A DNA stretch of 64,000 nt. Source: Ophelia neglecta (Eukaryota). The notes under the pieces are model-generated. The model ran no database searches. It saw nothing but the letters and a program-made list of their open reading frames with translations, and had not been told where the DNA came from. Shown here one piece after another: positions 5,701-60,733 of the stretch (within the stretch, counting starts at the first letter, position 1; every line of letters starts with the position of its first letter). The position numbers and the translations under genes were made by a program. The stretch covers positions 35,340,001 through 35,404,000 of the forward strand of contig OZ260661.1 of the NCBI GenBank assembly GCA_965285935.1, given 5' to 3'.

Positions 5701-8700
5701 AGGTCAAAGTCATATGAAACTACACTTAAGACACAAGTAAAAACGGATTCCAGAAATCTAATGAATATTACGATAGGTCAATAAGACCTTGAAGTATTTG
5801 TAAATTAAGATAATATCGATGTGATATGCCCAAAATGATTCGATTTCAAGCGAGCGAAGGCTCATTTTAGGAGGAATTTCATACTTATCTGATGATTTTG
5901 CATTATATGGTACAATGTTTAGTAGTTTACATTAGTTATAACACCATAGTGCTACGATAGGCGATATTAAAGTAGTATTACATGGTTGAGTGGTTAACTC
6001 AGTGGTGGTGGCTGCAGTGGTGGCAGTGGTGGTTGGTATGGGCTCTTGGCAGTTGATTCCAATCCACTGGTCAGTGCATGTACATCGGTACTGGTTCTCA
6101 CGGTTTACACACGTGCCACCGTTCTGACACGGGCTGGAGTCGCACTCATTTATATCTGAAATAAAACACGAACTCTGCAGGATATATTGCGGAAGGGCAT
6201 GGGCGGCCTGCATGAAAAAAAGTGGATGGTTGGGTCATCTTCCTTCCCACGAACGGAAAACCTCCAGGATAAATTATTTAAAAGCCATTCTCTCCCGAAG
6301 CTTGGAGAAGCCGTTCCGTGGCAAACCCTTCGATTCATCCCATCCCAACCTATTAATGGTAAGTACCCAAAATAAAGTACAATTAAATTCATGAAAAAAC
6401 GACGCTACTGACTATGTTAGAATGGATCTATGTCAGTGACCGGCCAACGGGAGAGAGTTATTGAACAAGATGGCTCGTTATTAAACATTTAACATTTTTG
6501 GAATGGTCTGCGCTCTCTTCGAAGGAAACACACCAACACTCACCGCTCTGGCAGTATTAAAAATTAACATTTTCGAACGATAAATAGGAGACAGTCTTTA
6601 TAGACACCAGGTGAACAAACGGTGTGATCAGTAGAATACATAGGAAAATAATTGACCAGGCAGAAGATCTGTCTGAAAATTCATACACAAATTACGGCAC
6701 GCTAATCATTTCAGAATCAATCGCATTTATCGCCAATTTCTTGGAGCTAATGGGGAGGGGGGTCTTGCCATTTATCCAGTGTTTTGCACAAACCTCCCCT
6801 AATTAAAATAACGAAGAGAATCATTCTTCCATGATGATTAGAGCCAAAATTGTAACATAAAAAGTGGAAAAATAAGCAATAATAATCGGAACAAACAATG
6901 CTTTTTCTCCTTTTAAAAGTATACGCGAACATTTACTTACCATTTTCGCAGTGAGGCCCGTCATATCCGCCTGCGCATGTGCAGTTGTAAGCGTTTATTA
7001 AGTCGTTACACTCGCCGTTGTTGATACAAGGGTTACTTTCACACTCGTTTGTTTCTGTGGGATAAGGCATTCACATTAGGAAATGTTGTGATATCATCAA
7101 AAACAGAAATTAATAATCAGAGTTATTATTTTCTACAGAAAAAAATCCTATTCAAAGAAAGCTACAACAATTAGAAGTCGTCGAAGAAATTATTATAAAT
7201 AAGTATATTGTCTTTCTATTAGGTTACTCTGAATAAATGCCTAGTAGTATGATTGTTTCATTACCAACGCAAGTAGTGAAGGCGGAGTTTTCATAGCCCT
7301 GATCGCACTCACAACGGTAGGAACCGGCCACGTTGACGCATGTGACCACATCGCCGACACAGGGATTCGTTAGGCATTCGTCTAAATCGTCCCTGTGCAA
7401 ATCAGACAAAACTAATTATTTAAAAGCAACATTAAAAGGTGTAGGAGGTCGGAATTTTAAAAAATCTGCATATTTTGACGGATTTGGGTAAAATGACTGA
7501 AAGAGAATGGATGAGTCAAAATTAGAAGTATATTCATTTCGAGTATACACTTTTCATGATTAGAAGTCACATTTAGGTCTAGGAGCTGAACTGGCCTTGA
7601 GAGGTCATCAAATTAGATGGCACTGATTATTAAATCTGTGATTGAGGAAATGCCTTCTATACTTTGTGCTTCTTGTACAAAAAGAATCGATGTTAATATA
7701 AGACTCACGTGCAGCTTCCCCCAGTAAATCCGACTGTACACTGTTCACAGCCGTAGGTAATGTTACAGCCCGTCTCCACCCCACACGTACACTCATTGAG
7801 ACAGCCTTCTCCCCATAGACCATCCTCGCAGGCTGAAAATGAAATAAGGTACCGTTGGGATTTTTCTAAGCATGTTAGGCCGAATGGGTTAAGAAAACGT
7901 CGTTGATAGATTCAATAAAGTACTACTCTTGTCGCTTTTCTTCGGGAAACAACTGAATTGTTCAACCTGTGATAATCTTCACAACAGAGGAAGATGAGTT
8001 AAGGTAGATGACCGTGAACTTAGATTGACTAAGTGGTTTGAAAATAACGACCATTTTCGGAGAAATCTCTTTGATTTTTGGTATGATAGGAGATGTCTTC
8101 TTCTTCGGCAGAGCTTGATCCCGCCCATCGAGGAGCTGACACAATGGCAGCATCTCCCCCAACTAACTCAAATGTTTTCCCTTTCCCCGAATTCTTCCCT
8201 AAAATTGTTCTATTCAACAGCAGCTCTCACCTTGACAGAGGCGTCCGTCTGATTGCAGGGTGTACCCGACGTCACAGGAACAGGAATAAGTACCAACCTC
8301 ATTCTGGCAGTTATCTGGCTGACTACACAGGTTCAGGGCCGCATCCCCACATTCATCCACATCTGTATTAAGCATCGTATCAAATGTTACTACATAACAC
8401 CAACATTCTGCATAGCAGTATAATTAGATTTGTATCATAATTAGTCGGACCTTCTACGATAAATAAATTATTATATAACCCTTCGTGATTATTATTTTTA
8501 ATCGGGAGCCTGCATGCATAATGATTTGTACAGAAAGATGCACACTTTTCCGTTCAAAAGGATCACGGTATGCAGGGTATAGTATTGAGGACGCCATCTT
8601 TTATCACATTCAAGCTCCTGCCTTCTTGGGGCTTCGAGGAGTGTCTTAGAAAATGTCACATATATGGTATAAACAAGTCCCCTACCTTGGCACGTTTGTA

Positions 8701-11700
8701 AGTCCGAGGCCAGTTCATAACCCCTAGGGCAGAAACACAAAACCACGCCTGTGCTGTTGGAACATCCATTGGTGCAGTTGAGACCCGCTCTTTCGCACGT
8801 GTTAGCAACTAAACAAGGAACATTGAATGAGTTTTTAACATACATTTTTATGGGGTAGGCCTATCTTTTGTAATTCTAGTGACTCGTTAGCGTCGTGTAT
8901 CCAATAAGCCAATCTCCGTAACCAGCAACACGTTAGATACTGGTAATACGAGACAGCTGAAACACTAACTAATGAAATTCGTACTTCTAAACCTACATCA
9001 TTTAGTCTGATAAACGATATTGTGACTTTACCCTGTCACGCAGAATCATAGTTTAGACAACAGAAATAAGGCATGAATACAAAAAAAGGTAAAGAAATTG
9101 TGTTTTGTTTGTGTTATCTGAGAACAGAATGAGTTTGGCTTGTTTGAAATATAAGATGGTTTTGCAATACGAAGTAGCATATCTGGACAATTGATCCCCC
9201 CCCCCCCCCCCTACCCTTGTTCATGACCTGACCTGTCTTTCTTTTCCCTATAAATGTTACGGGGAATCTTCCAGAAAAATTGGTTCTGATCACAATCCTA
9301 AGCATCCCCTAACATTGCTACGTGTTCATGTACAAAAGTTCACTATCAGTAGTATAGGAGAGTTGATTGTCTTACTGTCAGTACAGGTGCGGTTGTCTGT
9401 GTTGAGGTCGTAACCGTCCAGACAGGAGCAGACGTAGCCTCCTGGCACATTATTACACATCTGCTGGCAGTCGTCAAGGCGGGAAACGCATTCATCAATG
9501 TCTGAACAAAGAAACACGAAATAAAGAATAACTGGTGAAACTAATAAAAATACTAACATGCGATTACATTCCCAGACATGTGTATAATTTCAGCAACTTG
9601 TCTCTGTTAGTGTAGCATAATTTATTTTCTTCCCAGTTTTTCTCACACCTTCATCTTCCCAGAACGAGTTATCAGTTATACACCTGATATGAATGTTTGT
9701 TTAGAAGGCAAAAAATCGAGGCTGCCAAGAAACCCCGTATTTGCTTCGATGACCGATACTTGCATTTATTTATTTTATAATCGAGGTAACCTCCTAACGC
9801 CCGATGTTGTCGAGGTCAGTACAATTGTTTCCATGGAGGCAAGGAGTCCCTCTTTATCAGTGGACCCAAGCTTGTGCGTCCAAATAACTATACATCTATC
9901 ATTAATTGTGAGTTGTGTCTTACCATCACAGGTATTGTTCGCCGCATTCCGTAGGTAGCCATCTTTGCAGAGACATTTGTAGGTCGCGGGCAGGTTGATG
10001 CATTCCTGATCACAAGGGGGCGTGATTGACGTACATTCGTTGGTGTCTAAAATGTATAGCAATGTCAATAAAATATCAAATTGATTCTCCTATAAAACGC
10101 ATCAGTTTAAGTTCCTAAAACCATCGAAGAACGATGATTTGGTAGATCCCATGTTATGCCTACTACGTGAGGCTAAAGTAACCGGACATTGAAAAAGGTA
10201 AACTGCACATGGACTACAATAAAGGTAAAAAGGAACTACAAAATGGAATACAGTTGAATTGATATATGCCAAATGTTACTCCCTTGAAGTTCCTTCTGGC
10301 TATTTCCGGTGAGGTAGGCTTGTTCACCTCTGTTAAATAATTTTATTAACGAGAAAGATATGTCAGGCTGCAAACTATGTTGCTCTACTCAATGGACCTA
10401 TCTAACTTGTGCATATATATGCTTTATTTGGGACATCAGCTGTTCTTACCTACACATGCCCTTTCATTGCCGAAGGTGTCCTCGTAATAACCAGGGGGAC
10501 AACCGGTGCAGTTATAGGCGATGTCATTCGCAATCTCCTCTTCGGGGGTGAGGTCTATGCAGTTTACCATACCCAGACATGGGTTGGTACCGCATCCGTC
10601 GAAGTCACTTTCGCAAAAGTTTCCTGCAATTAAATTGTAAATGAGGTGAATAACTTATAATATACTCAAATCGAAATATTATAATCCAGAAGATAATTTT
10701 CTAATTTTTAAATATTATAATCCAGACAACAGGCATGAAACCTGAAAACTCTTACCAATGGGGAAAGTTAACATTTTAAAACATTCAGGTGGGCCCTGAC
10801 TTGTTTATTCTTGATTCAAATCGTGCACAAGAAACATCTAACTATGACTCTATTCTTGATTCTAAATTTGTTGATAATGAAAAAGGTCATTTTTGTTTAT
10901 TTGAGCATAGCTTAAATTTACACGCATGATTATGAAGTTATACGGGAGCATACTTTGGCACACATTAACTCATAAAACCAGTGTGAGGTTTCAGAGAAGA
11001 ACTGTTTCCTGTCAAAAGCAGGAGAATAGGTATTCTTATTACATACCGTCCCACCCGGTATCACAGGCGCATTCTACGATCCGGAAGGCGCTAAGCGTTG
11101 ATAGGTCAAGGAACTCTCCAAACAGACATAAACCTTGATCCGAGCAGTTACAGAAAAGGACGTTAACGGTGAAGGAAGCTGCCACGCCGCCGCGGGAGTC
11201 ACGTGCTCCAAACCTGTCAACACAAAACAAAGATTAAACGTTGATGTCTCCATGATCACTTCAAATAAACAACACCTGGAGTAAGCTCTGTTAAATAGGT
11301 TCATGTTGTTTTTCGCGCGGACTTCAACTTATTATTTGACCCAGGAGATGAATACAGGTACTATTGCGCATTGCTTATAGGCCATACGAGCATAGTATTA
11401 TTCCGCGCAGCGAGTAGTACACTAGGTGTGAAATTAGGCTACTTGCGGCGCGGAAGAATGCGCAAAATTACCGTAATTACTTAAGTATGAGCAAATTCAA
11501 TCACACGTGATCAATTTTACAGCGCAATGGTTCTCAGACATGTATATTATGAATTTTTGCTCAACCTTATACGGACTGAATGGAATTAAATATTAATACA
11601 CTGTCGGGCTTTTAAACTCACGTCAGGTCAACCGAGTTCATATTGGTCGGTGTCCAAGTGAATACACCTGTCGTATTGTCAAAAGTGGCGCCGTCTGGTA

Positions 11701-20700: not shown

Positions 20701-23700
20701 TTGCAAGTACTTAACATGTATGGTATCAGGGTGTTAATGTTGAATTACCTGGGCGTGCAGATGTTTCCGGTGCTATGCTAGCGGTTGGGGATTTGAATGT
20801 GGAAGGGGCTGCCGTACCCATAATCGTTGTTAGAGACTGATTAGTAGTTAGTTTGACACTTTTGGTAGTTATTTCAGAGGTGGATGAAATATCATCTGTT
20901 GGTTCAAATGTTATTGGATGGTTGTTAGTTGATGTTAATTGGGTTGTCAGTTGTGTTTTGCTAGTTGTGGGTTGCCTCGTTGACGTCTGTCTCTTCGATG
21001 TCCTTCCTTGTGAGGCGTTTGAGACCAACCGAGTTGTTATTGTTTGTTCAGTCGTTGTGTCTGTGAGTGATGTATAATGTTGATCGCTTGTTATTTTCAC
21101 TGGAGCAATTGCAGATGTCATCGCCTTAGAAGTATGCGGCGTGATTTCTGTTTGGGAAGCAGTTGAGTCTTTACGAGATGTTACAAGATGTTCAGTCACG
21201 CTTTCTGGATGAGATGTGGTTGGTGATGCAAATTGAATAGTTTTAATACTTTCTTCACTTACGGTGATTAAGAGTGTTGTTCCATTTTGAGAAATGGTTG
21301 AGCCTCTCTGAGTTGCCGTTGGTTGTTCAGTTGTAGATTCTGCTTGGGTTGTTGTTGTTTTTGTTTCAGCTTTTAGTTTGCTAGTTGTTATTTTTGACTG
21401 CAGATTAGTTGGTTGTGTTATAATAGTGACAAGTTGAGAGGTTGATTGTTTTGAAGTGGTTGTTTCATTCCGATTGGACAATGGTTGTGCGGTTGTTGCT
21501 TCAGACAGAGACGTTGTTGGTTTTTCTGTGCTTGTTTTATACTGAGTAGTTGTTAGTTTGTCTGTTGTAGTTTTCTTCTGAGCTGTACTTTGTTTCGAAG
21601 TGGTTGTGCCCTGCAGAGTAGTTGTTGGTTCGTCACTTGAGGTGTTTGTTTGGGAAGTTGTTTGTTGTTCGTTAGTTGTTTCAGTCTGACTAGGTGTAGT
21701 TGAGTTGGCAGATGTGGTATCCACGTCGGTTGTCCTTTGTTGTGTGGTAGTTGTGACAAAGAGATTTGTTGTATTCTCAGTCGTAGTTCCCGGCCGATTT
21801 GTTGTTTGTGTTTTGTCTGTTGTTATTATTAGAGTGGTTGTAGTTGGGTTATTAGTTGTGATTTCCTTGTTAGTACTCATTTCTTGTGAAGTGAGCGTGC
21901 CATTCGTAGATGTTGTTACTTGTTCAATTGTTGTGTTTGGACGAGATGTTGTAAGGTGTTTCGTTGTTGTTTTATTATCAGTCGTTGTTATCGGTTTTAC
22001 AGTTGTAGTGTCAATCATTGTCGTCTTTGACTGTAAAGTCGTCGAGTCTTTACGAGTTGATGTTGGTTGTTCAGTAATGGTTTCTGGTTGCGAATTGGTT
22101 TGTTCTTTGGTTGTTGATTCAATTTGAGTTGTTTTGATAGCTTGTCCAATTGTAGTGGGCGATAATGTAGTCTCGGAAAGGAAAGTCGTTGAACCTTTCT
22201 GAGTTGCAGTTGGTAGTTCAGTTGTAGATTCTGCTTGGGATGTTGTCGGTTGGGGAGATATCGTTTTAGTTTCACTTTTTAGTTTGCTAGTTGTTGTTTC
22301 TGACTGCACACTTGTCGGTTGTGTTATTATGGTCACTTGTTTAGTAGTTGATTGTTTTGAATTAGACAATGGCACTGCAGTTGTTGCTTCTGACCGAGAC
22401 TTTGTTGTTTTTTCTGTGGTTGTTTTATACAGAGTAGTTTTTAGTTTGTCTGTTGTGGTTTCCGTTTCAGCTGTACTTTGTTTTGAAGTGGTTGTGTCCG
22501 GCCGAGTATTTGCTGGGTCTTCACTTGAAGCATTTGGTTTTGCAGTTGTCGGCTGTTTGTAAGTTGTTTCAATTTGAGTAGTTGAAGTTTGGGTAGCCGT
22601 TGTGGTATCTAAGTGGAATGTTGTTGCCTTGGTAGAAGTTGTGTCAATACGAGTTGTTGTATAGTTAGTTGTAATTTCCGGGCTCGTTGTTGTGTATGGT
22701 TTGTCTGAGATTACTAAATGAGTGCTTATAGTTGGTTTATTGGTTGTGGTTTCCTTCTGAAAAGTCATTGAATGTCTAGTGATCGAGCCAATCGTAGTTG
22801 TTGTTTCTTGCTCACTTGTTTTGTTTGGTTCAAATGTATGTGCCTTGGTTCTTGTAATGTAATCTGTTGTTTTTTCTCGGATTGATGTTAAGTCATCGGT
22901 TGTTGGTGCCTCCTTAGCAGAAGTCGTTTGTTTAGTTTCAGTTTCCCTCAGAGTTCCTGTTATGTGTCTAGTTATTGATTCTCCTTTGGTTGTTGAGTAA
23001 TCAGGCATTGTTTGTGTGGAAGTTGTTGTCATTAGTTCAGTACTGATTCTTGTTTGATTTGTTGGTTGATCTGTTGTGTTTTTTGTCTGAGATGTTATTA
23101 GTTGTGTAGCTGTAATATCTTTCTGTGTTGCTAACTTCACAGTTGTGGCCTTGTGGGTCATTAACAGGTCAGCTGTAGTGTCTTTCAGAATAGTGTGTTG
23201 TGTAGGTTTGGTTTCTGGTTGAGATGAGCTAGGTTGATCAGTGGTGCTTTTGGTTACAGTCGGTATATCAAGGCGACCAGTTGTTGTTGGTTGAGACGTT
23301 GTAAGCAAACTGGCAGTGTTAGTAAGCATACCGCTTGGTATTTCCGTTGTCGTGTCATCCCCAGTTGTGGTTGATATAATTTCTGTGGTTGTGTACCGTT
23401 TAGTTGAATTAATATTGGATGCTGTTGAAAAGGAGATAGTGGGTGAATCGCCTGCTGTTGTTGTTAAATGCGATATTGTATAATTCGGTGCAGATGAGTG
23501 TGTATTGCTGCTGTCTGAGTTAACACCAATCGAGGTTGGTATTTCATTAGAGGTGGTTGGGTGTGCATCCGCAGTGCTGTTAGTAATGATAGGGGCAAGT
23601 GTACTGATTTCCGTAGTAGACGATTGGGCAGCCGTAGTAGCTGTTGGTTAAACACGCAAATAAATTAAGACATAATTAACAGTGAGCAAATAAAACAGAT

Positions 23701-47032: not shown

Positions 47033-47907
47033 AGGAACAAGTAGGCCTATTATGATATTCAACGTAACATACGTGTATTTGGGGTGCTTCTTGCAGTAAT
47101 AGGCGGTAAAGATGTCATATGAACACCGCGTGTACACTATTCACTCTGTTATTGTTAAACACGTGTTCTTCTCGTGGTTAAATATATAATATGATTTGGT
47201 CAGAAGTCGGTTTAACCTGACATGGCTATGCGTGTCCTGTCTGTGTAAAAAAAACATATACTTTCAGGAACTAGCTAGGGGGAGGGATGTAGAAGGGGGT
47301 AGTTTGATGTTTACTATAGGGTATGCTCTCTCTTTCTTTCCCTGTGCATTTTTTCACCTGAAATCTTCCCGAAATTGACTCAGTATAGCTCCAAGTTGTG
47401 CAGGTAGATTTGTGACAAGGAATTAGGAACTAGTATTTGGTCCATTGCCCCCCCCCCCCCTCCCCGACGCCATCGACCGTGGTTAAATATGACTGGGTAA
47501 AAATGCCACATGATCTCCGTTTATACGCAACTCTATCCGGCCTCGAGGTAGACGATGAGGATCAAGGTCCAGGTCTCCCGGCTGTATCAACCTTCACATA
47601 GCCAGTCTACTTCGATCAGGAGGCCTATCTTATCAGGTGTATTAGGAATTTTACGAGATCAAAACCAGACGAGTTATTAAGTCCACTTAGTTAAGTTATA
47701 CGTCTGTGTATTTACTTACGGTGGAATTAATTTCACACAATAAATTTGATAAAAAAGCCCCTTATATTAAAAATCAAGTTTTACGTTCCATTTAGCCTAT
47801 TAGTGGAAAGGACAACATTGAATGTAATATCGCCGATGCCTTTACCCTTTCCGTTGATTGATCGACTTTTATCAAGTTAATCATCAAGATAAGAATTGTC
47901 AGTACGT

Positions 47908-47915
47908 TATAAATA
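47908..47915 (+). promoter_or_regulatory. Candidate TATA box for variable exon A
   Basis: TATAAATA about 80 nt upstream of ATG 47993; AT-rich context, so a chance match is possible. Confidence 0.35.
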
Positions 47916-47992
47916 CGAATGTAAATTACATTAGGCTTGCAAACGATAGATGGCAGGAGGAAGGAGGATTGCTTAAAGAAAATTTTGCCAAG

Positions 47993-50900
47993 ATGGCGGT
48001 TAAAATGTTGGGCATGGAGTTCGTTCCATTCTCTGTTCCATTTGAGCGACGACTACAGACTGCTGCTGTCGTGTTTTACACTAGTAATTTTATGGTTTTG
48101 CCGTTTTTCTTCTGCCTCCTTGCAATATTTTTGCTCTTCACTAAATTTTATTGGCTTTCGCTTGGATATTTCCTCTGGATTTATTATGATACGCGCGTGC
48201 TAAAAAGTTCTCGTGGCGGGAACAGGAGGGTTGAAGCTTTCAGACGTTCAGGATTATGGCGCTATTTCCGGGACTATTTTCCTATATACCTGGTGAAATC
48301 CGCGGACCTTCCTCCGCGCCGCAACTATTTGCTAGGCTACCATCCCCATGGTATCTTCGGCTGTGGTGCTTGGGCCAATTTTGCGACCGAAGCAACTGGG
48401 TTCAACGAGCAGTATCCAGGCATTCGACCTCATCTGGGGACTTTGGAGACGAATTTCATGTTGCCCGTCGTTCGAGAAATTTCGCTGTCTTCTGGTAAGT
48501 TTAACGCCATTGCATCTATTAACATCAAATTTGTCGATTGCAAAATAATATTTCAGACATAAAATGGACACATGAACTGCGAGGCCAAAATCCAAATGCA
48601 CAATAGTGTAAAATTGAAGGGGCTTGAATATATGGGGGTGGGGGTTGGGGGGTTGGGGGGTCGGGGGGGGGATGGCGGAGGCGGGGAGGTCCGCTATTAA
48701 AATGAGAGTGTGGGACGGGCGCCTCCCTCCGGAGAGGGTAGCTCTAGGTGTCGATCGATGTGTGTGTGTGGGGGAGGGGGGGGGGGGGCACCATATTTGG
48801 TTAGCTTTGCTGGAGACCAAAGGGTATGGACAGAGCTTCCACATACAGTCGTACATGAACATAGGTCCCATTCAGCTTTATAAATTCAATGCGCAGCCGC
48901 AGACGTAGAGCTTATTAATAACTTTAGAATGGCTTGACTTTCGAGGGACCGTGTATTGCATTGAGGCCTATGTACAGTCTCTTTTCGAGACTGCCAAGAT
49001 ATCTACTCGATCCAGCACAGGATACACGTATCGTAGCTGTATTCATGAGAGTGTCCGCTCTCAGGGATTTAAATGAACAGTTCTCACATATATGTACGCG
49101 ACATTGTACGTATCAGGGGCATCCTCACATATGACACACTTCTACATGAAGTGGTCTAACAATATCAGCATGCAGTGACCAAAACACAGTGTGTATTGAA
49201 AAGTGTGTTGTTTTCGTTTGGAAAGTAATCACGTTAAGCCTATGATCTGTTGGTCTGGTGTTTGATCAAAGTACAAGAACATGTACACAGGATATACTTG
49301 TATTTCGATCGTCTGTACAGACAGCAGTCACATCACCAGGACTGACTGGGAGCATTTCATTTATCAATAGGCGTATACATGTGTAGTGTAAAATGAAGAA
49401 TCTTCCGGGATTGGAGTTCGTTCCCCTCAGCGTCCCCATGGAGAGGAGGCTGCAGACGGCCAGTGTGGTTTTCTACACTTTGACCTTTGTCCTGTTTCCC
49501 ATTCTGTTCGTTTTGATTCTGTTTATATTGTTTTTCACGCGCCTCTTTTGGGTGCCTCTCGCTTACATAGCATGGATATCATATGACGTCATCGTGGAGG
49601 ATACTTCGAGTCGCGGTGGTAGACGCTTTGAATGGGTTCGTCGTCATTCTATTTGGCGCTTATTTCGGGACTACTTTCCTTTACATCTGATCAAAACAGC
49701 CGAATTACCACCTAGGAAGAACTATATCATTGGATATCATCCCCATGGAATAATGGGATGTGGGGCTTTTGGTAACTTCGCATTTGAGTCCACGGGATTT
49801 AGTAAACTATTTCCAGTCATTCGCCCACATCTTTTGACACTGAAACCTAATTTCCGGCTGCCACTTATTCGCGGCTTTTTATTGTGGAATGGTAAGTTTA
49901 TTACTTATACTAATTTAACACCCTATATGTAATAAGGGAGTATATGTAATGGCCATTAACCTGAGTCTTAAGTTTGCTATGCCTATAAAAGTACGGACTT
50001 GATGACCGTTAGCAATTGATTAACTATTGCTTCGAGCAAGTTGCGCTTGACTCTTAATCTTGAAACTCGATTTATCTACTTTAAGTGCGATTTTTGCACT
50101 CGAAACTCGATACATTGACTCGAAACTGATCATGTTAAAATATGTTTGCGTTATAGTAGGCATGACCAGTATTTAACTGTAAGCTCTCACAGAAACCTCG
50201 GCCACCTTAGTTCTGGATAAGGTTAAGAGTATAAAAATATGTCAAACTGCCTACTTGACTTTATTGTTGGAGAGTTAGTTAATCACAAGGCTGCCGAACT
50301 GTAGACAATTTTGCGTATACGAAGTACCTTAACCTTAACCCTTTACTTGATATATGTTTGGTTTTTAAATATTCTATATAGCCAGGCAAATATGTTAAGC
50401 ATCCCATATTTGTACGACTATTAACACTCTAGCTGGTAGTTTTAAATAGTTTTGTCATACTATATATACTATATATACCCGGGCCATGCACCCAAACTCG
50501 GAAGTGATTTGAATTTTCGCCAAGATATAATTGCGTCCTCGTTACCACGGTAACGGATTGGGTAATTACGATACAGCTTTGTCGTCCTAACTTTTCCGTC
50601 TTTTGAAGTACTAACAATAATATTTTATTTGTTTAATTGACGCCTTCATAGAATAAAGCATATCACTACAGCCATTAGTCATGTATTCCTTGTCTTCTGG
50701 GATTACTATAGGCATACAGGTTCTCGTAGAAACTGATACAAAGGCAAGTTTTATATGTTTGATTCTTATTTTCTTATTTAAATCGGAATAGTGTATGCGT
50801 GTGGGGATTGGGTTTGGGAGGGGCTGGGCATAGATATCCACCACTTCTTGTTTCAATTAAAGGTTAATACAATATGATATATGATATACATAAACTTTCT

Positions 50901-53900
50901 AACGCAAAGCTTAAGCTTAACTCCTCCTTGCAATTTGCGACTAACCTAGGTTGCCACGCATACAGTATATTTAGATATCGTAGTATTTGATATTTTGGCC
51001 CCGTGCAACTTATGTCGAGGAAACAATGAGGGTTTTGGTGGCTTTTTCGGTGGCACTTTCGCCTACTACTACTTGAGTTACGAAATGCTTTCACCGCCCA
51101 TATAAGCTACCGCAATTCAGCAAAATATATTATAGGTAGCAATACAGTCCCCAGATTTATCATGATTCCATCTGTTAAATAAACCTTCTAGACAAATAAT
51201 GATGCCTGCTACCGACCTGTAAATGACAGATATGAAGCGCCTATAAGCCAGGCCATTAATTGATTTCTTTTGGGTGAACTCCGAAAATTTTCTGTTTCCA
51301 TTGCAAGGGATATAAAGAATTACATTTTAACGCAGTCTTATCTTTTGGATATGGCTTTTACGCCTTGTATTACATTTTCAAAGATAAATTTATAAACATT
51401 GAATAACCAAGACATATTACTAACTAGACCTCGCTGCGATACGCAGAAAAACATTTTGTCATTGTTGAATTACTAAGGACTGGGAACAACAAACGGCTGT
51501 TGTCAAATCAAAAGATAAGGTACAGTTTTAGAAGATAATATACATGCTGGCGTGTTTCGCGTATATCAACATTCATGAATTATCAACCTAGATATAAATT
51601 GGACCAAAGTTTGACGTGATAAGTACTGTCGTCTGGTGTCTTCGATTATGGGTCAGGCCTAGTTAAAGCGAAGAATTATACAAGATGGCGGCAACAGGTC
51701 CATGTCGGCTGCCATCATACTAGTAGGTATCGGTCAACATCGACCATAAATAAATAACGTCCATGCTTATAGAATTTATTTATAATCAGTGTATAATGTC
51801 GGCAATGACTCAATTTATATATTTTAACAAAGTATGACGGATTGGGGGTGGGGGGGGGGGGGGTGGGGGGGTGGGGGTGGGGGGTTGCCACATTGTGGAC
51901 AAATTTGCTTGCCCAAGAGCAATTAAAGGGTGTCACCTCCTTACACTAGAAGTCACTAGAAGGTCGGTAGCAGGCATCATTATTCGTCTAGAAGGTTTAT
52001 TTTATAGATGGAATCATGATAAATCTGGGGACTGTATTGCTTTTCATTGCGTGCTTTCATCATCATGTGGACTGTTATATTAGCCTAAATGCAAATTGTA
52101 AACTTGAGTTCTGTATAGGATCGGTAAGTCCGGGAACATGCTTGGTGATATTAAGTTGTGTAGTTAAAGCTTTATTCATATGGGTTACGATGTATGTCTA
52201 CATGACACCTGAAATGATAAATAAACAGTCGTCTTGCCAATTTTTCCGGCGGTCCTCTCCAGAGGGTGCCACTTGCGATTTGACCTCAATACGCTGCCAT
52301 GTTAGATCTGTGTGTATGTACATAGGCCTACATGTATATGCTAAGGCATTATTGATGGAGTTCTATCGATTCGCAAAGTCATGAATTATATATATAAGAC
52401 ATTGTATGACACTTAATGACTCTTAAAATGATGTAGGCATAATACGAAATCCATATAGGTATTCATGGGATTTCTTTTACCAATGACAGCTTTATATCCC
52501 AAACTTTTAAATGTAATTTCACTTGCAGATCAAGGTTTCTCCGAACTTTAATTTACACTGTTCAGTTTCACACGTACACGTAGTTCTTTTTTGTGTGTGT
52601 TATTTTGTTTGCTCCATACAAGGATAAGCCGACATTCCGAATTTCCCGGGCTCAAACACACTACACCCTAATGTGCCCGAGATAATGTGTAGTCTAGATG
52701 TTATTTCGCCTTCCAAAAATGCAATTTTCACCGATAAAAACAGAAATGTATAAGTCTATTTAAAAATAAGCACATGGTCTATAATGTAGGTAAGGACCAA
52801 CCCGTGATCTTCGTTAGCCTTATTTACAAGTCAGTCATCCGAGCTGAAACTAACAGGAATATGAGAAAGAACCCCGTAATTGGCGGCTTTTGGAAGCTGA
52901 TTTAGCCTAGCCTAGGGGTGATTTTATTTTTTCACGTAGTGAGAAAATCTGAAGGTTAGGCTATATTCACGTATTGCACATATAGTCAAATATTGAGATT
53001 TGACTATAATTGATATTAGGGAGAAAACCTTGAGGATTACCGGAAAATGATAGTGATCATACGTTGGCTTAGTTTACTGCCTAAATTCATAGCGAGACTT
53101 TCAAGGAGCAACCGATGTTAAATGCCCCCCCCCCCCCTTCCAGGTGGAGACTATATCCGTTACCGAACAAAATATCCGTACAATAAATATGCGGACGGTA
53201 TAATTGGCTAGGTTAAAATGTCCGCCAGAAAGTTCAAACTGGGACAAGATGTCCAAGGACCAACCTCACAAATACGTCACAGCGTGTCAGTATATTAATA
53301 GAAAAGGGCTATCCTCACGATTCGCATTGTTCAGGTATTCCGGGATCTTGAAAACTTCCCCCGGCAAAGCGGTGAAACTTCGAAGAGCATTTACCTCTGT
53401 TACGAAGGGTACGACGGACGTGGAACTTCGTTAATATCAACAAAGTGAATCAGTCGTACTTTTATTGTGAGGGAACACGTGTTTCTACCCTAGATGGTCG
53501 GAATAGATAGAATACTCAACACAGAATTTTTCGGTTATCTAAAGCTACGCATGGACGCGCTGTATGTGCAGAGGTCACCTATGCTGCTATAGGTTGACCA
53601 ACGGACAGCACCGAAAGTTTTCGATGAGCCATTTTACATTAAAACTAAAACACATGCGGAGCAAACGATGAGAGAATGTTATAAGCGGCTATATCTAATA
53701 ATATTATCACTATATAATCTGATTTTGTTTATCAAAGAAAGAGCATATTGAACACATGATTAACGGTTATCTTTAGCGACACGTTCACGAGTAGGACGAA
53801 CTTTATATTGTAGGTGCAAAGGCCATATGTGCAGGGTTAACAACGGCCCACCCTGAGAATTGACCCTGCACATTAATACACTTGCGGAGAAAACGATGAA

Positions 53901-56900
53901 GACTTTTCTGGGACTGAAGTTCGCGCCACTCGGCGTTCCCATGGAGCGGAGGCTGCAGACGGCAAGTGTCGCAGTGTACACGTTGACCCCTACGTTATTT
54001 CTTCCGCTCTTTCTTTTCCTCCTGTTTATTTTGTTCTTCACGCGTCTATTCTGGCTTCCTCTCGCCTACGTAGCTTGGATAGCTTATGATGTCATCGTGG
54101 AGGATACTTCGAGTCGCGGAGGCCGACGCATGGAATGGTTACGTCACCATACGATTTGGAAATACTTTCGGGACTACTTTCCTTTGCATCTGGTTAAAAC
54201 TGCGGAATTACCTCCTAGAAATAACTATATTTTGGGCTACCATCCCCATGGTATAATGGGATGTGGTGCCTTTGGCAACCTTGCAACCGAGGCTTCCGGA
54301 TTCAGTCAGAAATTTCCCGTCATTCGTCCTCATCTTTTGACATTGAAACCGAACTTCCGGTTGCCAGTGATTCGAGGCTTTTTACTGTGGAATGGTAAGC
54401 TAGTTATCCTTACAGGGAAATGTGTGTCTTATCTTAATAGCTACTTATCCCAATAGATTGTGTCAGCACTAGCTCGGCCTACTTTGTATTCAACAAATTG
54501 AGGCCAATTGTGCCCAATGATAATCAAATTATCATATTTCTCGACCACTATAAAAAGGTATGCAATATATGGCCAATAATAAGTCAATAATGTTTGATTT
54601 ATATTTGTATTTGTTCATGATATAGTATCAGGTGTCTCACATATGAAGCTAATATTTTTAACAATTTAATAAGCATTGATTTAATGGGAAACTGATTATC
54701 TAAAACACAGATGTTAACAAAATAAGGTTCTTGTGAGTCAAATGATCATTAGTCGAGTATAGTCAAGTAAATCTATCCGAAATAATCAGGAACCAGCGGT
54801 CACAGCCCTACACGCATCAATATTTTAATCTCCAGCTCCTAATAAGTAAATAAAACATGTAATGAATTGCGTAACTTGCATCGAGAAGTAGTGAAGGTGG
54901 GTTTTACTTATAATTGAGATGTTCTGAAAACATGCATTATAACAGGGGTGGATCCAGGAATTTCCAGGGGGGGGGGCACTCCATGTGTAGGAATTGAAAA
55001 CCAGGAATTTCCAGGGGGGGGGGGGCACTCCATGTGGATGAATGGAAAAGCGGCCGGGGGGGGGGGGGGGTGGCAGCAGAAGTTACATACATAGGTGGGC
55101 TTGTTCAGAGTTTTAAAAAAATAATTGTTAGGGGGGGGGGGCAGGCCTATAAGCACCCTCCCCCACCCCATCCCCTTTCCCCCAGGGCGCCAGAAAGGTC
55201 TTATACAATAGTCAGTTTGAGACAAGGCTGTTCATTCTTTTCATCGACCCCTTAACAGCCATTGAACAATTCCGTCAACCAGATACACGTTTAAAGGTTT
55301 ATAATCAAAATGGTCGAGTTTGCGTCTTTCAATATAACCATGCGGAGGAGGCTCCAGACGTTAGCCGTGTTGTTTTTCAACACTTGAACGCCCCCTTTGC
55401 TCTTGTTTTTAACGATATTTTGCATAATCTTGCCATTTTCGGAGTTCTTTTGATGTCTTTGGTTTGTATCATGTGGGTTGTGTACAACGTACATATTCAA
55501 CAGACTTCTCTATAGTCGGGGGGTTAGAAGATGGGAATGGTTCCGACATTCCGACTTGTGGCGTCACTTCCGGGACTACTTTTCTGACTCGTTGGGGAAA
55601 ACTATTGAACTTGATAGCACCAAAAACTACATTTTTGGTAACCATCCGTATGGAATTATAGGGTGCGGTTCTTAAGCTAATTTTGCGTCATAATTATGAG
55701 ACTTTACAGAAAAGTGTGGAATAGAATCTAATTAAAAGCTATCTTTCAAGTGCCTGTTGCAAGAGCGTTTCTGCTGTGGTTAGGTGAGCTATTGGAAGAC
55801 AACAGGGATCTGGATCGGAGAAAACGGATTAAAACATATTTAGCACAGGTACGCGAGGCGTCTATCCGCTTCTACTTAAAATAACTAAAGGTTTGAAACT
55901 CCGCGGCTGCTGCTCTGTAAACTTGTCGGTCCTTGCCTTAGTTCGCGATATATTCACTCCAGCAGTAATTTTCGGCAGACAACGCTACTTCCCGGAGTAA
56001 AAGTATCACAAAAGCTACTAACTCAAACGTGTGTTATTTTTTATTCACAATAAAGTTGTATCGATGAAAATTAATGAAATCGGAGCTACCTATTCATATT
56101 TTACCGTGGCTATGCACGGTTCAAGCCATGGGAGACCGTCCATCATTGTCAACCAGTAGGTGACTAAATATATATAAGGGCTAGTAGCAGATAGCCGCCT
56201 CGCGTACCTGTGATATTAAGGAAGACATATTTTGATACCTGAAGTAATGGATGTTTTATGTAAATAGAACTCTTACATCCTATGTTTATCCTTGGTCACG
56301 TATTATAATGTGATCTTACATATATTACAGGAGTCTGTGACGTCAGTAAGGCGAGTCTCCGATGGATCCTCACAAAACAAGGCCCTGGGAATGCCGCCAT
56401 TATTGTAGTGGGAGGAGCCGAGGAGGCACTGAACGCTCATCCCGGGAAGTATGACCTGACCCTGAAAAACCGTAAGGGCTTTGTCAAGATGGCCATCGAA
56501 ACAGGGTAGGTGGCGAGGAAATCGGCCCACGTGTACGCCGGTATCCTCAGACCCAATGAACGTCTGATTTATCAAATATTGTTTTCAACTTTTAAGTTCT
56601 TCCTAGCACAATAGCTACACTAAGTGGTTTGCGGAAAATTATGTGCAATATGATATGCCACATATATATATGTAAGTAGTAATGCAACTGTATATAAGGA
56701 CTGTGAAGTTTAACACAATATATGAATGTACGCTAACTGTTTGACTGGACTGTTATAGGAAAGGTTTTCACTTTATTTTGTTGGTCGAAAAAACAAAAGC
56801 CCTAATGCAGCTCAGAGTTATATCAAAAATATTACACAAGATTGATCATAATCCACCACAACTATATATTTCGCCATTCGTGCCAAGTTTAAATCCAATC

Positions 56901-58545
56901 ATACCATTATTGTTACCTCTCACACTTTACAGGCACTATATTATATATGACACTTTATACCTATATAGCATTTTTAATTGTCAAACACGGATTTATGCTT
57001 TGTTTTAAAGCGTGGATTTCAAAACATAACTAATTTGGAAGCCGTGGGATTCGCCTATGTAGGTTATAATAATGCTGTTTTTAATGAAAAATGCCGATAC
57101 CAAAGGTCGGAATTGAACCTAACCGCTCTGTATAAAGTATTCGGCGGGTCTTTTTCATTTGAAATTGGTTGTTAAACATGTCAGTTTGAATGCTTTTGGC
57201 CAACGTTGGACCAACTTTAGGGCAATGCATATATATGTATACATTGGCCCAAACTTGTATGTAATGCATCATGCCGATTAAATACCCATGCATTTACATG
57301 ATTACATGCATTTAGCCAAAAATTGGCTCAATATAGGTTCATATCATATCCATATGTGTCGTCCCGATATTAAACATAACTTATCGGCCCAATATATTAT
57401 GCGTGGGTCAAACATTGTATTCAATGCAAAGAGCTGACTAATGTCTGCTAGAATTCTAGAATTGCCTTGATATATATTTGTATTCATCGGTCCAATGGTG
57501 GGATTACATTAGCTTGATGATTATCTATATGCATCGGCCCCACCTTTATCTAATGCTTCAGCCCAATGTTCGTAAACAATATGTTACATGCATCGGCCAA
57601 TACTTTATGTACAACATTTTGTACAGCCATATAACAATGTAATTTTTGTGTACATCGACCCGATATTACTTTTTTTTGCATTGGGCCGATGTTGGCAGTT
57701 TTTTGCCCACGGGTTGTGCATCGGTTTGACACGTGCTTGCTATGTGGGCAGTATTACGTCTCTCAAGTGTGTGGATTATCCTTAGACTTAAAATCAGCTA
57801 TATAACACACTGTCATTACCCTTGCAGGGCCTCCCTAGTGCCGGTGTTTTCCTTCGGAGAGAATGACTTATTCTACCAGGCAAAGAACCCTGAAGGCTCC
57901 TATCTTAGGGCGTTCCAGGAGCGATTCAAGAAGGTCATGGGGTTCTCGCCCCCTGTGTTCTACGGCAGAGGAGTCTTCAATTATACTTTTGGTATGATAC
58001 CCTTCAGAAAACCCATTCACACAGTCGGTAAGTTAACTTCCATGCTGTTTGCTGCAATAAGTAGCAGCCTGATATGTCTGTCAAAATTATTGAAACCTAG
58101 TAAGGGATAACCAGGATATATAATAAGGATCCATCACAAAAAGAATTAGACACAATCAGAATTAATTCTACAATTAAAATATTTTTCATAATACACTCCT
58201 TTATATCACTCTTATTTAAATAGATAGTAATTGGAAAGAATTACAGGATTCCAAGACGATGCGAAATGTTGATATAAAATGAATACTCGTCATATAATTT
58301 GATACTGACTGGTCGCCGAACATTTTAACAAGTACTCGACGGTATTTCTAAGCGATTGATTTAACTCTTACTTTTTTCTTTGATGACAAGTTGGAAAACC
58401 CATAGATGTAGAGCAGTCTGACAATCCCACCATAGAGGACATAGACACCATCCATCAGCGTTACATGGAAGAACTCAGCCAATTATTTGACGAACATAAA
58501 ACCAAATATGGCATTGACGAGAATAAGAAGCTTAATTTCATCTAG
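47993..58545 (+). CDS. DGAT2/MOGAT-family acyltransferase (2-acylglycerol O-acyltransferase-like), isoform A: variable exon A + constant exons, 343 aa
   Basis: Exons 47993-48494, 56331-56505, 57828-58027, 58391-58545 splice in frame (phases 1, 2, 1). Motifs [49 protein letters not shown]. Confidence 0.82.
49393..58545 (+). CDS. DGAT2/MOGAT-family acyltransferase, isoform B: variable exon B + constant exons, 342 aa
   Basis: Variable exon 49393-49891 (MKNLPG...FLLWN G|gtaagt, phase 1) joins 56331 in frame; no constant-exon homologues were seen between it and exon C. Confidence 0.82.
53896..58545 (+). CDS. DGAT2/MOGAT-family acyltransferase, isoform C: variable exon C + constant exons, 342 aa
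   Basis: Variable exon 53896-54394 (MKTFLG...FLLWN G|gtaagc, phase 1) joins 56331 in frame. Confidence 0.88.
55310..55783 (+). pseudogene. Decayed fourth variable first exon (pseudo-exon D) of the MOGAT-like locus
   Basis: [25 protein letters not shown] ... [58 protein letters not shown] ... [14 protein letters not shown]|gtgag: at least four in-frame stops, HPHG changed to HPYG, YFP to YFS, an internal deletion near the 3' end, donor retained. Confidence 0.88.
55844..56212. mobile_element. MITE with ~30-bp TIRs and near-perfect 8-bp TSD (hAT/P-like)
   Basis: CACAGGTACGCGAGGCG(T/G)CTATC at both ends in inverted orientation; flanks atatttag / atattaag (7/8). Confidence 0.82.
56331..58545 (+). 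CDS. Shared constant exons (175, 200, 155 nt) of the MOGAT-like locus
   Basis: 56331-56505 [59 protein letters not shown]; 57828-58027 [15 protein letters not shown]...PFRKPIHTV; 58391-58545 [51 protein letters not shown] (AAG acceptor). Confidence 0.93.
57190..57750. repeat. Degenerate element with many short (A/T)TCGGCCCAA / TTGGCCCAA subrepeats, probably CACTA/EnSpm-like non-autonomous
   Basis: About a dozen imperfect motif copies in both orientations, ending in TGCTATGTGGG; left end not resolved. Confidence 0.45.
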
Positions 58546-58948
58546 CATTATTAAAATTCAAATTATGCAGAATATCTTATACACTCGTTTTTAACTTTAC
58601 GTGTACAGGTATACATTTTAAAACTGGGTATACCTAGAACTGTGCATATCTTAATTTTTTTTAAACATTTTTTACCAACGTTAATTTTATAATCTTTATT
58701 TAACGTTATAATACGAGGCGGTACAAAGATGATTGTCATGCATCTATCGTTTAAGCATCAATTTATTTCATGACAGGTGAACAGTGGGATTTTTTTTCCC
58801 GATGTAAATCAGAAATATATTTAAAAATCAAATCAACCATGTATCTTATGATTTATTTCACACAATAGGATAATCCTGGTTCACAAATCAATGATTGACT
58901 CTTCGCAAATAATATTCGTATGTGTGTTAAGCGTGTAATATGAAATTA

Positions 58949-58954
58949 AATAAA
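58949..58954 (+). terminator. Candidate polyadenylation signal of the MOGAT-like gene
   Basis: AATAAA about 400 nt after the stop at 58545. Confidence 0.3.
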
Positions 58955-60733
58955 TGAAATGAATTAAAATTGGCGTTAAAAATCAACCCTTGTACAATGT
59001 ATATCAACACAATTTAAGTTAAAGGCACTCAATCTTTAGTTGGCTAAAACTTTTGAGTTAACGTATAATCATTATCTGTGGCATCATATAGTAGTATTCT
59101 CGGAGTAACCAGTGAGTGTCATGCCCGGAGTTCATTATAAGATAACCATATGTTGTATTTCGCACGCCGTCATTTATTAATGCCGTCAAACTGCAACACC
59201 TCCCGTATCTTGGAACGAGCAAAATACGAAATTCTGTTATATAGACCAAATTATGCGAAAAGCTGGTCACAACAGTGCATACTATTTGAAATTAGCAAAT
59301 CTTGATTGTCCTTGTGAAATTCGGACATGCATTTCCGGTTTCACCTGCTACAAACGACGTATTGTACAATCCTGCCAACGGCCGTAAGGTGTCGTATGCT
59401 GGGAGTATGCATTTTTGGCAGTCCTTTATAAAGGAATTACGTTGAAGAAACCCTAAAAACATGGTAAATAAATAACAGGTAAGCTAAACATAGAACTGCA
59501 AAAAAAAGTAAGTAAAAAAATACTATATTGCAGAAAAACTATAAGATTGTATGCCTTAAAATCAATTATAAAACGACACGACTCTAGGAGCGATAAGGTA
59601 GTGTATCTACATATACTGTTCTCTACTGTCTACCTGCAGGCACTCTATTAAATACTCATAGATGTACAATGAAATATATAATAGACAGCATGTACAATAA
59701 ACACAAGCACAAAGTAACTGGAAACAGTAAAATGAAACACTAAATGTATCTCACGCGAACAGTGTTTCAAACACAGACATGCCTCTCTTCGTTTATTATA
59801 GGCTTTACCACTCTTTATACCATACAAGTAATATCACAATCCCTGCGATATAGCTCTTTATCAGAAGAATCAAACTACGGGCTAAAAGGGGTCATGAAGG
59901 TTGGCGGGAACGCCGGGAAGACTTCGAGAAGACGTCCTCTACACGGGTTGAGGTCAATGTCAGTCATCCATGGAAATTTGAACACTCTTTCATGCTCACT
60001 CCTCTCTCTCCCCCTGTTCTTCGGCTGCGCTGCTCAAGCACGTTTTTTTGTAAATTTAAGAGCCGGCTACTACAGCGTTTCAAAAATGTTTGCATGTTGG
60101 CTGAGATATTGACGCCAATTTCTCAGATATCCCGCGTTGCATAATGTGCTTAAAAAAATGAGAGGCCAACATTTTAGGATGTTGTCATTTCCCACTATGA
60201 TTCCTCGCTCAAGTTTTTGGCCGAGATTTCATACTAGCAGGTAGTAGTATAAACGCTGGCCCTAACACTGGTAATGAATACACTATTTTGAAGCAGTATT
60301 GACAGGGAGGCTTTTGTTTAATTTGCCGAGGTATGGGCGCAGCACTGTCGACGAAAGTCCCGATGTTGCATATATGTCCACTCGAGAGTTATCATGTGAA
60401 CTAAAATTGTACAAGACTTATGTGTCTTTATTCGAAGTGGGGCCTAGCTGTAATGACTTAACTGTGGGCATGGCAAGTTATCGCAAAAAACTTGGACAAG
60501 AAGTTTTTTATGACAAAGAGCTTGTGTCTAGTTTGTGGGATGGGGTAGGGAATAGGGAGAAGTGCGTTATGTATATTCTGGTTTGCTGCATAAGTTACTT
60601 TGATTTATCGTGAGGCATTGCAACCGAATACAAAGGTATAAGCATGCTTAAAAGATAGGATGTTCTGGCATACTCACCATTAAACCAATTAGCGTTGATA
60701 ACTTTTCTAATAATTCCGATACCGGTACATTCT

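Follow-up and report, generated by a model that had tools for sequence, protein, structure and literature searches.

Does a single acyltransferase gene encode several enzymes by joining alternative first coding exons to one shared set of downstream exons? The question is raised by a locus in a 64,000-nucleotide (nt) stretch of the Ophelia neglecta genome (GenBank assembly GCA_965285935.1, contig OZ260661.1, positions 35,340,001 to 35,404,000 of the forward strand; hereafter the window, counted from its first letter), an AT-rich piece of animal DNA that was read for the locus from 47800 to 59000. Three intact copies and one decayed copy of a first coding exon, which we call cassettes A, B, C and D, stand there before a single set of three constant exons (exons 2, 3 and 4). 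We propose that they form a single gene of the DGAT2/MOGAT family that is built on the multiple-variable-first-exon plan and would give rise to three isoenzymes, a reading to which we assign a probability of about 0.78 and whose splice junctions are predicted from the sequence.

The cassettes and the single set of constant exons

An earlier note on this DNA, made from its letters alone, had described three intact paralogous first exons, each with its own ATG, membrane hairpin and family motifs, a decayed fourth one, and phase-1 GT donors that join each intact copy in frame to the same downstream exons, and all of this is borne out by translation, by hydropathy analysis and by the stops and indels of the fourth copy (Table 1). 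Cassettes A, B and C are intact open reading frames of 166-167 codons, each of which starts with an ATG that has an A at position -3, contains both RDYFP and YHPHG and breaks off after the first base of a codon (phase 1), directly before a GTAAG donor. Each of the constant exons has an AG acceptor, exons 2 and 3 have GT donors as well, and the in-frame joins to exons 2-4 yield predicted proteins of 343 residues for A and 342 residues for both B and C. The cassettes, located 7.8 kb (A), 6.4 kb (B) and 1.9 kb (C) upstream of the constant exons, encode the N-terminal 166-167 residues of these proteins, and the constant exons encode the C-terminal 176 residues. The N-terminal part opens with a short cytosolic segment, to which the membrane hairpin, YFP and the catalytic HPHG are added. 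Cassette D is a dead first exon that was lost by decay: its reading frame is interrupted by several stops and by indels of -1, +4 and -13 nt, and its motifs are altered from HPHG to HPYG, with loss of a catalytic histidine, and from YFP to YFS.

Table 1. Features of the locus and of its upstream sequences, in window positions
Feature	Positions	Strand	Length	Remarks
Variable first exon A	47993..48494	+	502 nt coding	167 codons plus 1 base; donor GTAAGT
Variable first exon B	49393..49891	+	499 nt	Donor GTAAGT
Variable first exon C	53896..54394	+	499 nt	Donor GTAAGC; intact cassette nearest the constant exons
Decayed cassette D (pseudo-exon)	55310..55785	+		Donor GTGAGC retained
Constant exon 2	56331..56505	+	175 nt	GGAEE and RKGF motifs
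Constant exon 3	57828..58027	+	200 nt	VPVFSFGEN motif
Constant exon 4, including the stop codon	58391..58545	+	155 nt	
15-nt block ATCAAAG...	49265..49279	+	15 nt	128 nt upstream of the ATG of B
Same 15-nt block	53731..53745	+	15 nt	165 nt upstream of the ATG of C

All six coding pieces are collinear along the Pfam profile DAGAT (PF03982; cut-off, 22 bits), with A, B and C matching profile positions 1-119 at 127-134 bits and exons 2, 3 and 4 matching positions 122-178, 180-246 and 247-296 at 68, 98 and 64 bits, respectively. RDYFP and YHPHG are invariant across 12 first exons, and the roles of the YFP and HPHG motifs are known from mutagenesis of mouse DGAT2. A hydrophobic hairpin is found in A, B and C, where 19-residue hydropathy windows starting at about residues 20-45 exceed 1.6 and reach maxima of 2.4-3.1. 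Judged by profile, motifs and hairpin, the encoded protein is a member of the DGAT2/MOGAT family with a predicted enzyme activity. Its substrate is not readable from sequence, and the database names of its relatives, '2-acylglycerol O-acyltransferase 1/2', are automatic annotation. Between the old cassettes, divergence peaks in the membrane hairpin (27-45% identity) and in the loop before YFP (38-58%), while the core from YFP to HPHG is 60-80% identical. As a conjecture, this divergence of hairpin and loop would fit a differing membrane context or differing access of the acceptor.

The back half of the protein is encoded once, as the note had also claimed. A tblastn search of the window with the gene model detected no second copy of exons 2-4, whether among the cassettes, hidden after A or B, or in the surrounding DNA. 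Profile hidden Markov models (HMMs) of exons 2, 3 and 4, built from 12 loci and run with filters off, gave one match each (E = 1e-36, 6e-42 and 6e-30, respectively); in the six-frame translation of 40000-64000, the next-best match had an E value of at least 0.78, and no decayed copies were found between the cassettes. Weak tblastn matches at 41.3-42.3 kb (E = 0.45-3.5) were rejected as noise, with no open frame of the family present there. When the whole assembly (762 Mb) was searched with Pfam, DAGAT was found at two loci only, the one described here and one on contig C2 (G000:C2:99907244-99913440, L012/L013). The C2 locus is 43-54% identical to the cassette locus and is an ordinary gene that has a single first exon and shares the four-exon structure, including the exon boundaries.

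The arrangement in a second species and the soundness of the assembly

Databases were searched exon by exon, and an exon search led to a 12-kb contig from another organism (L022; ENA ERZ25069296, contig ctg10869_4x_l) that carries four intact first exons, starting at its positions 2998, 4229, 5396 and 6507 and thus spaced by 1.1-1.2 kb, followed by a single constant set of exon 2 (7525-7699), exon 3 (8357-8556) and then exon 4. Each of these first exons has an ATG and a phase-1 GT donor, and the four in-frame joins give predicted proteins of 341-353 residues. The lengths of exons 2 and 3 (175 and 200 nt) and their phases are identical to those in the window. A tree of the constant part with 17 loci pairs L022 with the window as its sister (support 95/94; 79% identity), whereas their first exons are only 53-59% identical. 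The comparison with other genomes that the note had called for therefore turned up the same architecture, with four cassettes and one constant set, at a seemingly orthologous locus in a rather distant relative.

In the tree of first exons, B, C and the first exon of a related species (L023; run ERR14113986) form a well-supported clade, as do the first two cassettes of L022 (L022a and L022b), while A, L022c and L022d fall into a polytomy. The order of the B/C duplication and the split from L023 is ambiguous: C pairs with L023 in the protein tree, but B and C are slightly closer to each other by nucleotide identity. No further array was encountered in a JGI scan of 80 loci, and a search with the full-length relative P0295 returned rotifer and fungal proteins with no isoform annotation. 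Proteins that match a cassette twice (in Darwinula, Trichinella, chytrids and Hypsibius) were set aside as fused or tandem whole genes, not cassette arrays. Three further loci (L026, L028 and L032) begin too near their contig ends for the presence of an array to be judged.

Other relatives stem from compact genomes or from transcripts. L021:61-1268 has the same four exons with introns of only 65-72 nt, and L035:177-1190 and L036 are seemingly intronless or cDNA-like. L084:7858-18254 consists of four tandem complete DGAT2-like genes, the first exons of which are split by extra introns, and illustrates the usual expansion by whole genes.

An array of this kind would also appear if tandem whole genes had been collapsed or mis-joined in the assembly, with exons 2-4 of A and B being dropped, an artefact that the note had itself named. 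The only public runs found to contain the locus are three runs from one sample with genome-sized contig sets, which identifies them as DNA. Their contigs are interrupted at two poly-G tracts (48632-48794 and 51836-52026), where continuity is provided by the long-read assembly alone. However, they cover 48400-54399 evenly, with a depth of about 15-30 in B, C and the spacers alike and no doubling over B or C; the depth is higher only over repeats at 52.4-52.6 and 53.0-53.4 kb. The even depth, drawn from the same sample as the assembly and hence not independent of it, argues against collapsed whole-gene copies. The Pfam search moreover left no spare exons 2-4 anywhere in the genome, and the unrelated assembly of the other organism shows the same layout with spacers of 1.1-1.2 kb and no gaps. 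We regard an assembly artefact as very improbable.

Some features of the introns were observed along the way. Poly-G or GGGGT-type tracts lie at 48632-48794, 51836-51889 and 54960-55180, and short-read contigs end at the first two of them. The intron between B and C contains an inverted repeat at 51138-52041, the 90-nt arms of which (51138-51227 and 51952-52041) are 92% complementary and 724 nt apart, and which resembles a small non-autonomous DNA transposon. A variant that skips 51155-51286 at the left arm of this repeat is also present in all three DNA runs.

Selection on the cassettes and the proposed mechanism

B and C share 78.5% DNA identity overall and 63% at third codon positions, while A is 58-61% identical to B and C and 37-45% identical at third positions, which is near saturation. 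No near-identity tract indicating recent gene conversion was found among A, B and C. Between B and C, the nonsynonymous divergence (dN) is 0.13, the synonymous divergence (dS) 0.67-0.92 and dN/dS 0.14-0.21; between A and either of them, dS is saturated and dN is about 0.39. With the first exon of L023 as the third sequence, which is 77-79% identical to B and C (79% to C), the changes specific to the B lineage were found to comprise 2 nonsynonymous and 10 synonymous ones, where the neutral expectation is 77% nonsynonymous (p = 2e-5), and those specific to the C lineage comprise 2 and 17, respectively. In the protein tree, moreover, the branch of B is shorter than those of C and L023. Polymorphisms in B (2 synonymous and 3 conservative) are too few for use. 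In a neutral simulation of a 166-codon exon, which counts substitutions alone, ATG and frame were kept in only 0.2-0.7% of cases when the number of substitutions per site was 0.33-0.46, and with 0.8 this share fell to 0.04% or less. For A, the evidence for constraint consists of its open frame, its motifs and its retention of 40 out of 43 columns without variation among 11 other first exons; with Pfam, A scores as high as B and C. By these measures of codon change, the cassettes are old duplicates under purifying selection, as tested on B and C, and an unused cassette at this locus decays, as D shows.

These results also bear on whether the locus may be an ordinary four-exon gene that uses only C, with A and B being orphaned relics of partial duplication that were never joined to the constant exons. 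Of the intact cassettes, C is closest to the constant exons, D demonstrates that cassettes die at this locus, and the use of A or B is read from the sequence rather than from RNA reads. Old as they are, A and B have nevertheless remained open, with ATG, motifs and donors intact, which a neutral frame would have survived with a probability of at most 0.7%; the changes in the B lineage are strongly skewed toward synonymous ones, and four intact cassettes have been kept in the second species. We therefore regard exclusive use of C as unlikely.

A, B and C have stayed open and conserved despite their age and are therefore taken to be translated. Half a DAGAT domain is an implausible product, one for which we know of no independent function, and the shared exons are its sole completion; we therefore infer that A, B and C are each spliced to the constant exons. 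Selection as such indicates the translation of the cassettes, not their splice partner, so the upstream cassettes might alternatively be translated alone or be spliced elsewhere, yielding truncated hairpin-plus-HPHG proteins with a regulatory or dominant-negative role. However, in both species the cassettes stop at equivalent codons and carry a phase-1 GT donor compatible with the exon 2 acceptor, and a search of the window revealed no other coding exon downstream, which makes such truncated products very improbable.

Under the proposed variable-first-exon organisation, for which UGT1A, the protocadherins and GCNT2 serve as models (PMC1885805, PMC3325998, PMC3333863), a separate promoter would drive each cassette. 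From the cassette nearest the cap, the phase-1 donor would be joined to the exon 2 acceptor across 7.8, 6.4 or 1.9 kb, and any cassettes in between would be removed along with the intron. The result would be three isoenzymes of 342-343 residues that have a common back half and a front half differing most in the hairpin and in the loop before YFP.

The sequences upstream of the cassettes offer thin evidence for such promoters. A 15-nt block occurs upstream of both B and C (Table 1) and again in L023, 168 nt upstream of the ATG, with flanks that are otherwise unalignable; it is weak evidence for what may be a promoter element. Upstream of A, TATAAATA is found at 47908-47915, 78-85 nt before the ATG, and could be there by chance.

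The variable/constant reading that the note had put forward is thus supported by selection on the cassettes, the decay of D, the single back half, the array of L022 and the single-copy assembly. Several observations weigh against it. There is no RNA run among the public runs that contain the locus, and no upstream motif is common to all nine cassettes beyond the expectation from shuffled sequences. A has no orthologue for a lineage-specific test, so its recent disuse is possible. The array was met in just one other contig, that of L022; approximately unbiased tests fail to reject an independent expansion in each species (p = 0.41 and 0.07), and shared ancestry of the array between the two species is not proven. 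In five of the relatives (L015, L016, L019, L024 and L025), one first exon is present and no similar sequence lies within the 5-10 kb upstream of it, and three others (L017, L018 and L037) are tandem complete genes in which exons 2-4 follow each first exon.

Should the isoforms be real, this locus would amount to a natural domain-swap experiment in which the enzymes differ only in residues 1-167, and their comparison could show which region determines acceptor choice or membrane targeting in a DGAT2-type enzyme. That the isoforms differ in acyl-acceptor preference is pure conjecture. More broadly, we tentatively suggest, while thinking it rather doubtful, that the array is a conserved lophotrochozoan device for swapping the half with the hairpin and the catalytic histidine, and thereby for making isoenzymes with different acceptors (monoacylglycerol, diacylglycerol or fatty alcohol) or different membrane destinations. 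If this is true, swapped halves would do the job that vertebrates assign to separate DGAT2, MOGAT and AWAT genes. Such loci also call for caution in annotation, as they are easily mis-modelled as a gene plus orphan fragments or as fused proteins.

Known systems and neighbouring features

Arrays of large paralogous first coding exons are textbook vertebrate cases, represented by UGT1A, the protocadherins and GCNT2, the I-branching enzyme gene with three alternative first exons. To the best of our knowledge, few such arrays are known from invertebrates. The vertebrate UGT1A locus combines variable first exons with shared exons 2-5, contains pseudo-exons in its array and has undergone lineage-specific expansion (PMC1885805, PMC3325998, PMC2819257). 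The locus described here resembles it in having tandem paralogous first coding exons that each carry an ATG and encode the N-terminal half of a membrane enzyme, in having one constant C-terminal set and in having a pseudo-exon within the array. Unlike UGT1A, it is predicted to encode an acyl-CoA acyltransferase and not a glycosyltransferase, belongs to an invertebrate and forms a much smaller array, with three cassettes plus one pseudo-exon here and four cassettes in L022; its variable half carries the catalytic HPHG in addition to the membrane hairpin, and its promoters and splicing are predicted.

Multiple variable first exons have been described for UGT1, PCDH, GCNT2 and others, with GCNT2 being named among such clusters (PMC1885805). 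Like GCNT2, the present locus has a few alternative first coding exons of an enzyme gene followed by shared downstream exons, but the two are unrelated in fold and reaction, GCNT2 is a vertebrate gene, and its tissue-specific use of isoforms is documented, whereas the isoforms themselves are a prediction here. In the clustered protocadherins (Pcdh alpha and gamma), variable first exons with their own promoters are joined to constant exons by cis-splicing (PMC3333863, PMC7811963). The order of variable before constant exons is shared with the Pcdh clusters, which, however, encode adhesion receptors and rely on stochastic promoter choice and on CTCF/enhancer looping, with no hint of such choice at this locus. 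The vertebrate DGAT2/MOGAT/AWAT paralogues and the tandem DGAT2-like genes of invertebrates are of the same Pfam DAGAT family and share the four-exon structure and the local duplication; unlike these paralogues, which are complete genes (e.g., the invertebrate L017, L018 and L037), only the first exon is multiplied here.

Full-text literature searches, the coverage of which is incomplete, brought up no publication in which DGAT2 or MOGAT is connected with a variable/constant layout or with alternative first coding exons, in keeping with the note's impression that the architecture is undescribed for this family. The gene organisation itself belongs to the known multiple-variable-first-exon class, and the DGAT2/MOGAT case is apparently unreported.

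Two further open frames lie elsewhere in the window, both on the reverse strand. The first (20726-23329) is an 867-residue frame that is extremely rich in threonine and serine, mucin-like and without a Pfam match, and it coincides with a strong anomaly of GC/AT skew at 20-24 kb; the frame probably represents one large exon of a protein that is secreted and O-glycosylated. The second (8498-8845) is a 115-residue frame with weak EGF-type matches (cEGF and FXa_inhibition), both below the Pfam cut-offs, and may be an exon of a neighbouring gene for an extracellular protein.

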